Assembly: GCA_964247055.1 (NCBI GenBank)
Contig: OZ176053.1
Span: forward strand, 5,146,001 to 5,210,000
DNA from: Paragordius varius
Taxonomy: Eukaryota; Animalia; Nematomorpha
Reading direction: 5' to 3'
DNA: 64,000 nt
Shown here: piece by piece, positions 41,264-57,639 of the stretch
Position numbering within the stretch: position 1 is the stretch's first letter
Layout of the letters: the number at the start of each line of letters is the position of its first letter
The notes under the pieces: generated by a model
Database searches by the model: none
Told to the model about the DNA's origin: nothing
What the model saw: the letters and a program-made list of their open reading frames with translations, nothing else
Made by a program: the position numbers and the translations under genes

Positions 41264-44200
41264 ATGAGCAATCCAATTCAAAGTTGGCTTGAACTTGAAA
41301 GTGATCCAGGTTTGAAAAAAAATATATTTAGGTTTGTTTTCGTTACTTTTGCGGGAAATGGGTTTTTTATATATTAATCATTAGGTGTAAAAGGCGTTGA
41401 AGTCGAAGATGTTTATGATCTAAATGATAAATGGCACGCAAAGTATCTTATTTATTTAAATTGTAAATATTAATGAAAACTTTTAAGCCTAACATTCAAT
41501 AACACAAAAATTATATTAAGCTGTGTGTTTGCCAAATTATCCCTTTTTAACACATTCATTTATGAAATTTCACTTTTTTTCGTTATAAAAATTTAATATG
41601 CTTTAAATAGTATTCTTTCTCATAGACACTTAAGGTAAGAACCAGTTTTTCTTAATAAGGAAGTATTTTGCGATGGTTATAAATGATAAAGAAAATTGAT
41701 TATATTTAAAACTCAATCAGGATTCGACACTTCATACAGATAATTTTATATAAAAATTAAGTTTAAATTTCTCAATTTAATTTAATTCTCATATATAAAA
41801 TTTTTTGACCCTTAGCAATTTAATAAGCACATGTCCTTTTGGTAAACCTATACATAATAACTAACTAACTACATTTAAAGCGTCATACCGCCTATTTTTA
41901 ACCGATCAAAATACATCATTAGTTATGTAATTCCATGAGCTTTGCCGTGATCCAAAATAGATTAAGTCTTTACATATCCAAATCAATATATATTGAATAC
42001 AAATTTCTAATACCTATTGGTAACATTGAAATCATCCTTTTTTCATTAAATTGTAAAATTGCTTTGAAAAGGCCATATTGTATTTTAAACTGTAAAAAAC
42101 AGAAATCGGTTTTAAACCGGCAGATTTGAATATTAGTTTTGCATACAAGTGGTTTTATTCTACATATAATCTATAAAATGGAGATTATTTTAAAGCAAGA
42201 AACTGAAATAATTGGTATGTATCTTAAAATTAATCAAGAACTGGTTTTGGTATTTTTGGTTCTTGTTTCAAGCCAAAATAATATTTATCAATGCTTATTA
42301 TTACCAAAATATAGGACCATAAATTATATATTTTATTTTTAATGAGGCGTTAATCAGCTTGATAAAATTTGCTTTTTTATATATATTTTACGTCAAACTA
42401 CAAGTTAATCACATATTATTACGCTTAGGTTTTCAAATTAATTTTATTTTATAGACATACTTATGGATTTATATTTCTGTTCAAATGGATTGATGAAAAA
42501 CCTAAACGCCGAGGCACGGCTGATACCTTGGAATCAACGAATTATTTAACTGATAGTGATAGAATCAAAAAAATGTTTTATGCTAAACAAGTTCTTTTTC
42601 ATTTTTTCTAAGATAAAACTTTAGATTATACCAAATTCATGTGCAACGCATTCCCTTCTCAGTATCGTAATGAACGTCAATAATTTAGATGTTGGACCCA
42701 ATTTGTTGAAACTCAAAAATTTGACGCAAAACCTAAATTCCGAGGTATCGTACACGCTTTTAACTATTTGCATCCAATGACGCGTTACCATAAATGAAAT
42801 TTTAAATCTAATAATTCAGCATTATAAATATTTATTTGGTTAACGATATATACAGTCACACTTAAAAGATTGCGAATCTTTATATTAAAAAATTAAGGAA
42901 GTGAATACAGCTCTAAGAAAAAATATAATGTTTAGTTGGATATAAAATTATACGTATTTTTGTAGCATTTTTTTCAAAAACATTTAGGCATATTCAAATT
43001 GATTATTTTAATGAATTTTGCCGATCATAGTTAAGTCGCTTTTAATTGGCCCTAAACTTTAAAATTTATATGAAACTATAAGACATGATTTGTATTGATA
43101 TTCTCTAGTTTTTATTCACATTATTTGAATATTAACAAAGCGTGAATCTTTAAAAAAATTGTTTTACTTATTTTTTATTCTCTATATGCTTTTATAACAA
43201 AGAGATAAATCGTTATTGATACAATTAAATATAATTATAAATTTTTGTTTCTATGAATTTTTTTAGTCCCATTTTAATTTCTCTCTTTTGTCAGAATTTT
43301 TTTTTAAGTAATCCTTTATTATCGCCAAAAACATTACCTCAAGGTCAGATAAAATTTCCTTTATTTTAGAGAAATTTAGGTCAGTTGCCTACGTAATTTT
43401 ACTCTGGCTTTTTCTATCTCTTTTGAAAATTTAAAAAATTAAACAATTAGTTAATATTATAACCATAAAATGATATTTAAAATTTTAAGTGGATTAAACT
43501 TTGTAGATTATTTTTAACCGAAATCCCATCCTCTTACGGCTTTATATTAGCTTATATTTTATAAAACGATTTTGGCAAATTATTTGAAGTAGAAATAAAT
43601 AGCATGGAATTTATAATTTTGAGCCCAAACATAACCTGTTTGGGTGTATCAAAGCCGTTTCTTTTTGTCAAATTCTGTTTTTGAATCTGATTCAAAAACT
43701 TTTTGGGTAACCTTCTAATTATATATATTAATTATATTAAATTAAAATCAAAGAGGAAATAATTTGATTTATTTCATAAATAAAAATTAAAGGTATATAA
43801 AATAGGCTCAAATTCCTTAGCGAGTTAAAGCCTTTTTGTGGAAATTAAAATGCATATGGTATCTCATAGTACTTAACCATTTTTTTAACGCATAAATCAA
43901 TGAGAAAAGATAATACTGTTTATCACAAATTAAATTTTTTGATAAATATATATTATTTTTGCGCTATAATAGGACAAAGGATATGCCATAGCAAATATAC
44001 CAGAACTAGCACATGCTCATCATAAATTTGCAAAGTATCATTTTTTTCTACCGTTTTTTTACATAGATCATTTATTAATAATAATATTTGTTCTAAAGTT
44101 TAAAAATGGAAATCTATTATATTATACGTGTGTCAAAATATAACATTATAAAGCGTAATATTCAATTCATTGATCTTCATCCTTTTTATATAATTTTTAA

Positions 44201-47200
44201 TATATATAAACACATTAGCCATCCACTTTTAAATATATAAAATAAGGTTATAATTGCCAAAATATATATGTTAAAACAAGGTAAATGATCCTTATCTTTT
44301 AAGGCTAAAAGGCATTCCATTTAATACATTTGTTGAAAAAAAAGCGACGGACAAATATTATTATTTGGGACAAATAGTATAACTACAAAAGTTTGTATCT
44401 AAGATATGCAGTTTTTATTTTTAAATCGCGAAACAAAATTATTGATTGTAATTATAGCGTAGTTATTGCAGCTCTAAGACTACCTTTAAATTTAAAAATT
44501 GATTTTTGCTCTTAACATATATTTTTTTATCATTTAATTGGATGCAATATGACTTTATTTCTGCTGTTGACTAAAATAACCATTTCGATATTGTATTTGA
44601 AAGAATATTTTAACAACGTTTGTTATTTATCAATTTACAACTTTATGCCTAAGCAGAAATATTTTTGTCTCACCATTGTCAGAAAAGTGGCCAAAGAATT
44701 GTGATGATTCTAATTTGTTTGCATCTCAATTAGGATCATCTTAAACATTTCAGCTGGTGTAGTTGCCTCTTTCATTAACAAATTTAAAATATTAAACCTG
44801 CTTGCTTGGCTAATTATTTAGATGCGTCAAACGAAAATATATGTTTGATTGATACTAAACAATGTTATGGATAGTTTCGCGCTATACTCACTAAATATAG
44901 CTAGTATTTAGCATAAGTTGTTTATCTATAAATAACATATGGTATTCTTAGGGAATATCATTCTTTTGAATTTTCACTTAATAACAACTATCAAATAATT
45001 ATTTTTGACATAATATTTTATTATAACTTTTATAAAATAGAAAAGATAAAAATTTTAGCCTCAACGTTCCAAAATCTACCACAGTCCAGGAAAAAAGGAA
45101 TACTGATTCAATAACCAACATTGATGTTGTTGAAATGGATACAAAAGTAATATTTATGCCAGAAATATATTTAATTTGTTTTATACAAATATTAAAAATT
45201 TACTAATATGGAATATAGGATTATATAGACACTGATAATATCAAAAATATTACAAGGAGCCATACTCCCACACAACTTAATGCAAACGTTACCACTTCAC
45301 CAGCCAAACAATCATTAGGTTAAATATATTATTACTGATAAACATATAATTTTTGTATGAAAAACATATGACTACTTAATAGAAAAAAATACATGTAGTT
45401 TAGATTTAGGTCTTTTAGTTTTGTTACCGTCAAACATACTGTTGTGCGGGTCATTATTGTACAAAGACGATTTCTATGTGTAATTCGTCATGTGCTATTT
45501 TTTCTGACACTTTTTATAATGACAAATTTTAAATGACAATTTAATCTGTTTTTACCACAAAAAATAATTAAATATATTTTAGTTGGCATTAATTAAATTA
45601 TTTAAATTTTGGTTATAATGCAGGAAACAGAAATTTGGAAGAAGATTGTTTTCACTATGTTAGCTTTATACCGATTGACGGTGAACTTTATGAGTTGGAT
45701 GGTTTAAAGCCATATCCGATTTCTCACGGTAATTTACCATTTTTCAAAATATATTGTTATACAAAATTGTTTAAAACAAAATATTTAAACTTCTTTTTAC
45801 CACATATAGGCCCTTGGAATCCAAACGAAGAATGGACAGATAAGCTACGAAGAATTATTATTTCACGCATTTCCAATAAACCCATGTAAATATATTAAAT
45901 ACTATCCCATATATTAATCTATCCATTAAAAAGACCAAAAAATATTTTATTAAGTCATAAGTTCTTTCTTAAACTTTATCTGTTAATCCACCGTATTATT
46001 TTATTGTATTTGATTTTATCTAAAATAATCTTTCAAAATCGGTTATTATAAACTTATAATTATGGTCATAAAGCTACTAATTAATCCGCATATATATAAC
46101 TTAAATCAACATATATTATATTAGCATATCTCAAGTAAGTATTGAGAACATTAATTCATCCAATCTTACCTTATCACAAATGTCCATTTCTCCCATAAAA
46201 GCTACTCTAACCCAACAATCTTTAACTACTTTAAGTTCAAATTCTATCACCACCACGATTTCCAACGATAATTTATCCAACAATCCCATTAGTGTTTCCA
46301 ATGAAATCCGGTATAATTTAATGGTTGTGTGCAAGGAAAAACGTACCATACTCCGTAATATATTAATGGCTAAACGATCTCACCTATACTCTGCACTTCA
46401 AAGCCTACCCGTGGTTTATTATTGTTTCATTATAGTGTTTTATCATGTAAAGCCTTAAAGTATGAATTTATTTTCAATATAAAGGATGAGAATTTTTTAA
46501 ATCTTGAATATGAGTCTTTATATCTAACACTGTTCAAATATTTTAAACATCAAATAGTTAATTTACCCATTGTTAAGTTTTTCTTTTTAACAAATATACA
46601 ATATATTTTAATGGTGATTATATTTTTTGTAAACATTCAGAAAGTTTTTAAATAGATTTAACCTATTCTTTATAGCCAAAATTAAATATAATTAAGTGCA
46701 TCCATGTTTATACTTTTTTAGAATTCATGATATATTTTAGACTTTACGGACATTTGAAGATTTGTTTCAATTGATTGTGGCTGAAAATATGGAAAAAATG
46801 CGTAATGTTTTGCGAAAAACAAAGGTTTGTTTTTAATTTACTGTGAATTTACATTTAATATATAAATAAATCTTGTAGGAGCGAGTTTTTATGCAATCGT
46901 TTAAAACCAATATTCCAACCCGAGTCCGAAATAAATTTTATTCCCATAGTTCCATAAAGGTATAATTAAATTATATTTCATTAAATCATTGCGTTTTTCT
47001 GGATTATTTTTATTTTTCTTTAGATTTAAGTAATTGTTTTTATCATAATAGGAAATATTATCCACGATGTACGACATGCATACTGACATAATTAACACTC
47101 ATACTAATTTAAAAAAGGAAAATGAAAAATGGGATCGATACAAAGTAATGTATATTAATTGAAATTAAATATATTTTAAAAAGTTACAGCGCTTTGTACA

Positions 47201-54604: not shown

Positions 54605-55996
54605 TTGAGTGGTTAAAAAACAAAAAGACAATTTGAGTTGTGATTTTAAAATATCTTAAAGTGTTTTTATATTCTTTTACTGTGAAAAGCCCGCTTCACA
54701 GAATTTTTTTTCTATCAATTAAATAAAAAAATCATTTCTTATATAAAAATTATCACATATTTAAAATTTTTATCGCGCAACCCTTTCGCCTTTATTTTAA
54801 TTAAACAACTCTATTAAAAAGGATACCAAAAATAAAGATTTACGGAGGCCACATCAAAAAAATAAAATATCATAATTCTTAACTTTTTAAATATAGTTTT
54901 AAATAATTAAGGATATTTTTGGATGAAGCATATAACTTTCACCAAAATATTGTATTTACCATGTTTTGGGAAAATTTTTATATTTTTCGAAGTGGAACAA
55001 GTACCACAACAATTTCATATGCAACTTGCAAGGCCCGAAACCAAAGGAACCATGAAAATCCTGAGACATTTGTCTAGCAGAATATATGGTTTCTAACCGG
55101 AACCGCAACCTGTTCCTGAAATTCTAACAGAAACCCCTTCCTGGATCCAACAAGGTTCGGCGACACATTTCAAATTCTGTAAAACCAGCCCGGTTCCGGT
55201 TCCATTAATGAAAATATCGATTTAATCGAAATGTTCAGCATCATCGAATTGCATAAAAAGTGTTATCATATCACATTACAAACACATTTTGAAAAATAAA
55301 AATCAACACCAAATATTTTTCAGGAATATTTATTTCATCAATATAAAACTGGCAAATATAATATAGTAATATATGGTAATATATTTAATTAACTTTTATT
55401 TGATTTTTTGGAATTAGCGATATTAAATCATATTATATCACTGTTTAATTCAATTTAAAATAGATTTTATTTAAATCTTTTACAAAACTCTTAACAAAAT
55501 TTAGTGTTATATGACACTTTTTTATATAAATACTTAACCCTGAGAACCTAATTTTAATCAACTTTCATAAAAGTTACGAATCTCAATATTTATCCGTTGA
55601 TAATATTAAAAAGGTAATGACTAAAAAAATAAATAAAATAGAAATTCAGAAGTTATGCAGGCCCTAAGCCTTAGAATATTAATCAATACAATATTATATA
55701 TAAATCTTATAGGGGAAGAATAATACCCCAAAAGGCTTAAGCTCGTTAGCAAATATAATAATGTTCAGAAATTAAAATTATCAAAACTGACAAAATTCCT
55801 TCTCACATTTAAATACTAAAAATTAAATTTAAATATATAACAATATTATTTTTAAAAAGTCATACCTGGATAATTTAGTTTATTTACTTTCATCATTTAT
55901 TTTATTTACCAAACATCAGCCAATTAATCAGCATAATCATTTGGCCTTGATTCAAAATTATTTTGTTGCTCATATTTTTTCGCTAACTTGATAATT

Positions 55997-56392
55997 ATGT
56001 CAGAAAACCATGAACAATCCAAAGCAGGTCATGGTGCAGCAGGTTTATTTTATATCTATATTAATAGTTAAAGTTGGAGGTATGCGGATTACGCAGCATG
56101 TGAATCCAAATCGTGAAAAACATGATAAGACTGAAGAAGTAGCCGAAGATATGAAAATGTAATATTCTTTTTATTTTAGAGCTCAGAAAGACAAGCATCT
56201 CGACATATCTGGATATCAATCTAAAGTAATGTTTATATCTAATTATAGGGTGATTTAGATTTTCCTACCGCAGCAGTTAAGGCATTCCATGATAAACCTC
56301 CACTTGCTAGCAAAGATTGTCCAAAAATTGATAAAAACACCTTTTTTGCTAAGAACTATCCGCTACAACAACCTCGTCAAATCAATCATTAA
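55997..56392 (+). CDS. DAP: Death-associated protein 1, 108 aa, 4 exons
   Basis: Exons 55997-56042, 56068-56158, 56180-56225, 56249-56392 (introns of 25, 21 and 23 nt) give MSENHEQSKAGHGAAVKVGGMRITQH...ISGYQSKGDLDFPTAAVKAFHDKP...LQQPRQINH*. Matches the DAP1 motifs KAGHPPAVKAGGMRI, GDKDFP.AA...H.KP and IQQPR. Missed by the ORF track. Confidence 0.93.
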
Positions 56393-56559
56393 ATTGTGCT
56401 AAAATTTATAAATAAAGTCATTAGCAATCTAATCAATTGATTTATTTTATTGATTATATCATAATAAATTTAATTAACAATATACGATGCATAATTTAAA
56501 ATGTTCATCTAGGCATCTAATTACTAAAAATTATTATATGATAAGTGATATTGCATAAT

Positions 56560-57553
56560 TCAATGTTTTGTAAAATCGTTTGTCTGACGCCAAGCAGCGT
56601 ATTCAACTTTTTCGGCCGGAGTACTCCCATAATAGTATTTGCCATCCTTGTATTTTAAATCTAAATTATCCACAGAACGTTCAATTGAGTTTCCAGCTTT
56701 ACGCAAACCACTTTCTATTTTATCTCCTGATGTTTTAAATCCGCTCTCAATTTTTTCACCGGCAGTTTTGAGTCCACTCCCCAATTTAGCACCTGCTGTT
56801 TTGATTCCGTCTTCTATCTTGTTTTCAACATTGCGGAATCCAGATTCGATTTTCCGTCCTATTAACATAATAAAGTATTAAATAAATTGTAAAAATATAT
56901 TTAATACCTGCGTTTTTAACAGAATCTTCGACGTTGCCAACAGCATGCTTTATCTCATGACCCCATTCATCAAATTTCTTTTCTCCTTTGGCAGCTATGC
57001 GATCAGTTTCCGTCAAAATTCGACTAACTCCACCTTTTATTTCACGACCAAATTCATCAAATTTTTTTTCGCTTTTGTAAACAAATCGATCAGTTTCATC
57101 TTTAACTTTTTCTTGCAACCGCTTATAATGTTGTGGATCATAACGTTCCTCATCTTCAATTACTTCAATAATTCTAGGCTTTGCTCTACCTTCAAATTGT
57201 TCGATTCGATTTCGATCAACATTGTAGCCACGGAAATTCCACCATTTATGTTTGTTATCATCGTAATATGGGTAGGCGGGTCCATGATAGTCTTTGTCTA
57301 AGGTTGCAAAGTATTTTTGTCGAGCAAATTCATGTCTACAGTTTGATATAGCCATTCCCATTCCTGTGCCAAAACCTAATGCAACAGGCCAAGGACGCCG
57401 ATTAAATGCGACCACAGAAAACAAAATACCAAGACCAGTTCCTGTAGCAGTTTTTAAAAGAGCGTCGGATAAACACAAATCCCATTTTAAGGCAAGTCTA
57501 TCTTCAGGGTATATCCGTGTCGTTTCTTTAATAGTTTTTTCTTCGACTACCAT
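56560..57553 (-). CDS. MICOS10: MIC10 (MICOS subunit) domain fused to a long C-terminal extension with 11-residue repeats, 314 aa
   Basis: Exons complement(56908-57553, 56560-56858) with a 49-nt phase-1 intron. N-terminus KWDLCLSDALLKTATGTGLGILFSVVAFNRRPWPVALGFGTGMGMAISNCRHEF is clearly MIC10. The symbol applies to this domain only. Confidence 0.85.
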
Positions 57554-57639
57554 ATCAAATAAATATTGGCCTGATTGACTAAAATATGTTTGTGATCAGC
57601 TGGATTTAACAAAATAGAATAATTTTACCACTGAGTTAA

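Follow-up and report, generated by a model that had tools for sequence, protein, structure and literature searches.

A 64,000-nucleotide stretch of DNA from the hairworm Paragordius varius (assembly GCA_964247055.1, contig OZ176053.1, positions 5,146,001–5,210,000 of the forward strand; referred to as the window in this text) very probably harbors a single intact DAP1 orthologue of the Dap/Dapl1 family that is interrupted by three GT..AG introns of only 25, 21 and 23 nt. The gene spans 396 bp on the plus strand, from ATG to TAA (55997–56392), exactly where a first-pass annotation of this DNA had placed it. It is very likely a real DAP1 gene, with its splicing predicted from the genomic sequence. 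As a member of a known family the encoded protein is ordinary, and the intron class would be new for the phylum, though it is known in kind.

The four exons measure 46, 91, 46 and 144 nt and add up to 327 nt, which gives 108 codons plus TAA. Removal of the introns therefore yields the uninterrupted 108-aa frame that had been predicted. Exon 1 (55997–56042) starts with the ATG at 55997–55999, encodes residues 1–15 (MSENHEQSKAGHGAA) and contributes the first base of V16. It is followed by intron 1 (56043–56067; 25 nt, phase 1, GTTTAT...AATAG, 12 % GC). Exon 2 (56068–56158) provides the last two bases of V16, residues 17–45 and the first two bases of I46; its in-frame translation is KVGGMRITQHVNPNREKHDKTEEVAEDMK. 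Intron 2 (56159–56179; 21 nt, phase 2, GTAATA...TTTAG, 14 % GC) is the only one of the three with a length divisible by three (3n). Exon 3 (56180–56225) carries the last base of I46 and residues 47–61 (AQKDKHLDISGYQSK), and intron 3 (56226–56248; 23 nt, phase 0, GTAATG...TATAG, 17 % GC) separates it from exon 4 (56249–56392), which encodes residues 62–108 and ends in the TAA stop at 56390–56392. The translation of exon 4 up to this stop is GDLDFPTAAVKAFHDKPPLASKDCPKIDKNTFFAKNYPLQQPRQINH; it comprises the DFP..AVKAFHDKPP block and then the C-terminal tail L-Q-Q-P-R-Q-I-N-H (56363–56389). All of these features lie on the plus strand. Two codons are split by introns, namely G|TT for V16 (intron 1) and AT|A for I46 (intron 2). 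The introns agree letter for letter with those written out in the first-pass annotation, and all of them have the form GT..TAG.

The exons have a GC content of 37–46 %, the introns of 12–17 %, against a window mean of about 26 %. Upstream of the gene, a stop is found at 55934, and no in-frame ATG lies between this stop and the DAP1 start codon. Downstream, an AATAAA (56411–56416, +) begins 19 nt past the stop codon and is, by its motif, a candidate polyadenylation signal. The locus contains no open reading frame (ORF) of at least 60 aa. ORF-based gene calling would therefore miss DAP1, and the gene is as invisible to such annotation as had been claimed.

Homology searches, Pfam scans and hhalign comparisons were run per exon, using in-frame translations of single exons. 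Two exons matched the Pfam family DAP (PF15228) and no other: exon 2 at profile positions 9–34 (E = 7.8e-4, 20.8 bits) and exon 4 at positions 63–98 (E = 4.2e-5, 24.8 bits). The two matches are colinear on the profile. When exon 4 was searched with HMMER over 1.84 billion representative proteins, we obtained one significant match, XP_065316724.1 (E = 6.5e-8, 59 % identity). This entry (also listed as CAK9294714.1) is annotated in Gordionus sp. m RMFG-2023 as death-associated protein 1-like; it has 107 aa and itself scores 73 bits against Pfam DAP. In BLASTP, exon 2 corresponded to Gordionus residues 20–33, with 71 % identity in the KVGGMRI block, and exon 3 to residues 49–63, with 10 of 15 positions identical (67 %); exon 4 covers residues 64–107. 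The relationship to Gordionus is closer than that to the rest of the family. Exon 4 scores 73 bits with the Gordionus protein, whereas the second-ranked member of the family reaches 39.7 bits, and the family-variable stretches AQKDK..SGY.SKG.LDF and PP.ASKD are common to the window protein and Gordionus only. The first-pass annotation had suggested a tblastn search with DAP1 orthologues. With the Gordionus protein as query, this search found the DAP1 locus alone in the window (joint E = 5e-20), in a match that reads in frame through intron 2, and no second DAP1 locus in the window. The copy number in the whole 110.6-Mb assembly is likewise one DAP locus.

An alignment of 16 DAP proteins, used as hhalign template for each exon, placed exons 1–4 in order at template positions 16–25, 28–41, 67–75 and 78–115. 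The matches of exon 2 (E = 1.8e-8) and exon 4 (E = 1.9e-11) were strong. Exon 1 aligned weakly (E = 0.012), with its KAGHGA on the KGGHxP block of the family, and exon 3, also weakly, with its ISG on the VSG block. Taken exon by exon, the Pfam and Gordionus homology together with the residue-exact junctions described below bears out the original claim of a complete DAP1 gene with three introns of 21–25 nt.

The junctions can be compared with the Gordionus protein residue by residue. There, the residues that precede the blocks of exons 2 and 3 are V19 and I48, which match the split codons V16 and I46. Removal of intron 1 creates V16 and restores the motif A-A-V-K-V-G-G-M-R, and removal of intron 2 creates I46 in the context K-I-A-Q-K-D-K, equivalent to Gordionus I48. 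Upon removal of intron 3, SK|GDLDF becomes contiguous; Gordionus reads SK-GNLDF at residues 63|64 without a gap. On the hhalign template, exactly one column stays free for V16, and exons 3 and 4 have no column between them.

Several results weigh against our reading of the locus and have to be set beside this evidence. Exon 2 and exon 4, each scored singly, stay below the Pfam DAP gathering cut-off of 27 bits. Exon 1 gave no BLASTP match to the Gordionus protein, and against the family profile the significance of exons 1 and 3 is only weak. When the Gordionus protein was used as query in a word search of 5.8 billion proteins, DAP proteins were matched from a mayfly, from mussels, from a copepod and from unnamed sources, and none from P. 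varius; no transcript-derived DAP1 product of this species is therefore on record. The C-terminus deviates from the family motif I-Q/H-Q-P-R-K/R-x, which could alter the fit of the tail at the peptidyl-transferase centre. It has six residues past the invariant Gln, compared with 2–5 in the 16 relatives, leaving aside P0015 with its long, probably spurious extension. Finally, a sequence-only intron census of 264 kb of contiguous sequence including the window (ORF-joining at several stringencies, composition filters, a codon-usage dynamic programme, junction listing and combined filters) found no excess of 21–26-nt GT..AG segments over control dinucleotide pairs. Tiny introns are thus recognisable here only through homology. 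The census is limited by the frequency of random ORFs of 20–30 codons at 27 % GC, by the sparseness of genes, and by the control pairs, which also pick up "shadows" of real introns.

It is conceivable that the locus is an unexpressed relic, a pseudogene that still resembles DAP1. Transcript evidence is lacking altogether, and the C-terminal motif is atypical in its K/R to Q exchange and its three extra residues, as might be expected of such a relic. However, all 108 codons are open once the introns are spliced out, all six splice dinucleotides are intact, and the start codon, the stop codon and the AATAAA motif are in place. A pseudogene would also have to be the sole DAP locus of the genome, and invertebrates have a single Dap gene (10.1101/2021.11.03.467131). 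Most of the identity with Gordionus falls in the conserved blocks, and the acidic linker shows less of it, a pattern expected under purifying selection between lineages with about 55–60 % identity. We therefore consider a pseudogene very unlikely. An even less probable alternative is that the gene is real and its boundaries differ, either through longer introns that use other GT/AG pairs or through retention of the in-frame 21-nt segment. When all frame-compatible GT..AG pairs were enumerated, 13, 5 and 4 of them fitted the frames at junctions 1, 2 and 3, respectively, and the acidic linker near intron 2 is poorly conserved across the family, which leaves some room for other choices there. Only the proposed pairs keep all conserved residues, though. 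Every other pair deletes residues that the family conserves or that Gordionus has in common with the window protein (such as GHGAA, KV, IAQKD or GDLDF; at junction 1 it is GHGAA or KV that is lost), keeping the 21-nt segment leads to an immediate TAA, and the proposed junctions leave the right count of alignment columns. Together with the residue-exact junctions, this anchors the gene model well, and different boundaries seem extremely unlikely.

A further possibility concerns what the introns do rather than where they lie. The first-pass annotation had pointed out that the 21-nt intron, if retained, creates an immediate in-frame stop, and had likened this to the pattern visible to nonsense-mediated decay (NMD) in Paramecium. 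The stop itself is real: retention of intron 2 gives ATG TAA at once (56160–56162). Retention of intron 1 leads to a TAA at 56069–56071, 9 codons past the donor, and that of intron 3 to a TAG at 56256–56258, 10 codons past the donor. The only 3n intron thus has an in-frame TAA, and both non-3n introns shift the frame and run into stops within at most 10 codons. This is what a Paramecium-like, translation-coupled surveillance would look like, in which tiny 3n introns are rare and nearly always stop-bearing and unspliced mRNAs are destroyed by NMD. Short introns of ciliates are known to follow such a rule (PMC5014332), and in the P. varius genome many kinase-domain profile matches pass in-frame stops, as would be seen with stop-bearing short 3n introns. 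As evidence for NMD, however, the stop in intron 2 carries no weight. Whenever a GTAA donor stands in phase 2, the frame reads G|TAA, and GTAA is the donor in two of the three DAP1 introns, so that the stop follows automatically from donor and phase, and one such intron says nothing about selection. When the interior of a phase-2 21-nt intron of this composition was shuffled, a stop was still present in 21–38 % of the trials; in phase 0 the value was about 74 %, because the intron ends in TAG. In ciliates, the 3n/in-frame-stop rule rests on genome-wide counts, in Paramecium over tens of thousands of introns (PMC5014332, PMC8997360), and a single intron cannot discriminate. Surveillance of this kind in P. 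varius is accordingly a tentative and rather doubtful reading of the present data.

As an observation of a different kind, a ciliate genetic code was considered and rejected: under a TGA-only code, no unusually long ORFs appear, and DAP1 ends in TAA. This TAA falls three residues past the Gordionus C-terminus. An origin of the DNA from a lineage already noted for tiny introns (a ciliate, a myxobolid cnidarian or a dicyemid), for which the intron size would be nothing new, is very improbable as well: the contig measures 14.2 Mb, and the best relative of DAP1 is a hairworm protein. With an identity of only 59–71 % in the conserved blocks, the species is distinct from Gordionus sp. m itself. In Paramecium, TAA is not a stop codon.

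The donors of the three introns, GTTTAT, GTAATA and GTAATG, all are without G at position +5, and the acceptors all are TAG with an A 5–7 nt upstream. The introns would presumably be removed by the normal U2-type spliceosome. DAP1 is not the only place where segments of this size were seen. One such place is a UCH gene on contig 5 whose consecutive domain pieces leave two gaps of about 23 nt between them. In the window itself, at 41264–41450 (+), we could directly read a micro-exon of 30 nt with a GT..AG segment on either side, 22 nt before it and 23 nt after it. It belongs to the start of a gene that we take to be BAP1-like, whose next UCH-domain pieces are found by Pfam at 42625–42765 and 45635–45736. 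The spacing of these pieces indicates that the same gene also has kilobase-size introns. Across the genome, kinase-domain matches imply many introns of about 80 to several hundred nt, so that the ultra-short introns coexist in this genome with ordinary ones of about 80 to several hundred nt. Many kinase-domain matches also cross in-frame TAA or TAG codons, one to several per match, and stay in the same frame, for example at C4:6062153-6062845 and C3:6561438-6561866.

The family to which the protein belongs suggests a possible function. Dap, Dap1b and Dapl1 are small disordered proteins of zebrafish and Xenopus egg ribosomes (10.1101/2021.11.03.467131). Their N-terminal motif P-A-V-K-A-G-G-M/K-R crosslinks near Rpl31 at the tunnel exit, and their C-terminal motif I-Q/H-Q-P-R-K/R-x lies inside the polypeptide exit tunnel, where an invariant Gln takes the place of the last residue of the nascent chain and is joined through a hydrogen bond to eIF5A's hypusine; jointly, these contacts repress translation, as is known for zebrafish Dap1b and Xenopus Dapl1 (10.1101/2021.11.03.467131). 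With 108 codons, the window protein falls within the family length range of about 95–117 residues. The N-terminal motif is present as A-A-V-K-V-G-G-M-R, spanning intron 1, with the first Pro replaced by Ala; its K, V, G, G and R fall on columns that do not vary in the alignment of 16 DAP proteins. The central block ISGYQSK-GDLDFPTAAVKAFHDKPP fits the family pattern SG ... DFP..A(V/A)....H.KP. In the tail L-Q-Q-P-R-Q-I-N-H, the Q-P that is invariant in the same alignment and the R are kept, and Q stands in place of the K/R. By sequence, the Gordionus orthologue matches the ribosome-bound Dapl1/Dap1b chains 7OYC and 7OYA/7OYD (E = 6.9e-7 and 3.7e-4). A phmmer search of exons 2 and 4 against the PDB sequences gave nothing relevant, and the link to the PDB runs only via the Gordionus orthologue.

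If these motifs work as they do in vertebrates, the spliced product would be a disordered protein of about 108 residues that acts like vertebrate Dap/Dap1b/Dapl1. Its C-terminal tail would thread into the polypeptide exit tunnel of the ribosome, the two glutamines would sit at the peptidyl-transferase centre beside eIF5A, and the N-terminal PAVKxGGMR motif would be positioned at the tunnel exit. Stored ribosomes could in this way be kept silent, a plausible role in eggs and in larvae that have encysted. Hairworms lay very many eggs, and their larvae encyst. Judging from the conservation of the motifs, we lean slightly towards this ribosome plug as the main function of the protein here. The atypical tail would then be a small variation on the plugging mechanism. 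A brake on autophagy may coexist with the plug or may dominate; this role of DAP is under the control of mTOR. Negative regulation of autophagy is the other role described for the family (10.1101/2021.11.03.467131).

We also recorded a number of features in the surroundings of DAP1. A 256-codon open frame at 56828–57595 (-) contains a MIC10/DUF543 domain in residues 20–90 (E = 5.9e-20) and has a long remainder without Pfam match; this MIC10 gene and DAP1 would lie tail to tail. A Pfam scan of 20 long ORFs in the 264 kb returned matches only for MIC10 (DUF543) and for an endonuclease of the long interspersed nuclear element (LINE) type. The latter is an endonuclease/exonuclease/phosphatase domain at L019:7999-8841 (+, E = 2e-8), then followed by a 480-codon frame at C4:5359483-5360922, and the two together look like a fairly intact retrotransposon of the kind without long terminal repeats (non-LTR). 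A 715-codon open frame with 32 % GC at C4:5247949-5250093 (-) and seventeen more open frames of 150–350 codons in the 264 kb are without Pfam match; they may be lineage-specific genes or unrecognised mobile elements. At C4:5329046-5329816 we found an island of 49–54 % GC within this 27 % GC genome, with frames of 257, 152 and 116 codons across both strands; the 257-codon frame, on the minus strand, has no Pfam match. Twelve full-length copies of the 18S rRNA gene are located at C2:1811658-1995730 (-), one of them at C2:1811658-1813466. The distances between them vary irregularly, from about 9.3 to 46 kb, as if the ribosomal DNA array contained insertions or were interrupted.

The DAP1 locus offers a clean, homology-anchored case of animal introns shorter than 30 nt outside Myxobolidae and Dicyemida. 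A survey of 51 metazoan genomes from 2026 found such introns only in myxobolid myxozoans and in Dicyema japonicum, with median intron lengths of 22–27 bp in these animals, and leaves Nematomorpha unmentioned in its main text (PMC13644364). Introns are not discussed in the Gordionus genome preprint, and our literature search found no paper connecting nematomorphs with short introns. All introns of DAP1 are tiny and the gene is only 396 bp long, which makes it simple to amplify and clone and a handy minigene for studying how the metazoan spliceosome deals with introns of 21–25 nt. Such genes will be overlooked or broken up by ORF-based gene finders and by standard ones that impose a minimum intron length, and genes missed in this way bear on the large losses of universal genes reported for Nematomorpha. 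If the surveillance by NMD considered above were true, DAP1 would be a minimal natural reporter of such control in an animal, and "splicing spell-checking" together with intron miniaturisation would be convergent in a third animal lineage.

The closest known counterpart of the window protein is the Gordionus DAP1-like protein. Both belong to the same family, have the same order of blocks and are nearly equal in length (107 and 108 aa). The window protein differs in an N-terminus that is 3 residues shorter, an acidic linker that is 1 residue longer, and a C-terminus that reads QPRQINH instead of QPRK. The GC content of the two genomes is similar as well (26.9 % in Gordionus, about 27 % here). 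With vertebrate Dap, Dap1b and Dapl1, the window protein shares its small size, its predicted disorder and paired glutamines followed by P-R near the C-terminus, and like other invertebrates this species has a single gene. Compared with the fish and frog proteins, which have four residues past the Gln, its tail is 2 residues longer, and the basic residue after P-R is a Gln. The first-pass annotation had proposed that the junctions agree with the exon structure of the human gene. This agreement is conjectural, with one indirect hint for the first intron. In zebrafish, deletions in dap and dap1b across the border between exon 1 and intron 1 result in proteins of 18 and 20 aa (10.1101/2021.11.03.467131), and these truncations place the first intron of both genes near the PAVK codons, as is the case for DAP1 intron 1.

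With respect to the introns, two known systems can be compared. The 25-nt introns of Paramecium and the DAP1 introns are alike in size range and AT-richness, and each DAP1 intron, if retained, leads to a premature stop. In the ciliate Paramecium, however, almost every intron is tiny, whereas here one 3n intron was examined. Among animals, the likeness is to myxobolids and Dicyema. As in these parasites, we see GT..AG introns shorter than 30 nt (21–25 nt here), a splice signal reduced to roughly GT[A/T] and AG, an AT-rich interior that has an A shortly before the AG, a few bases away, and a parasitic host organism; myxobolid genomes further resemble this one with its GC content of about 27 %, its 110-Mb assembly and its introns of 21–25 nt. 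Unlike in myxobolids and Dicyema, the tiny introns of P. varius stand beside many introns of about 80 to several hundred nt, and the genome, at 110 Mb, is not a compact one.

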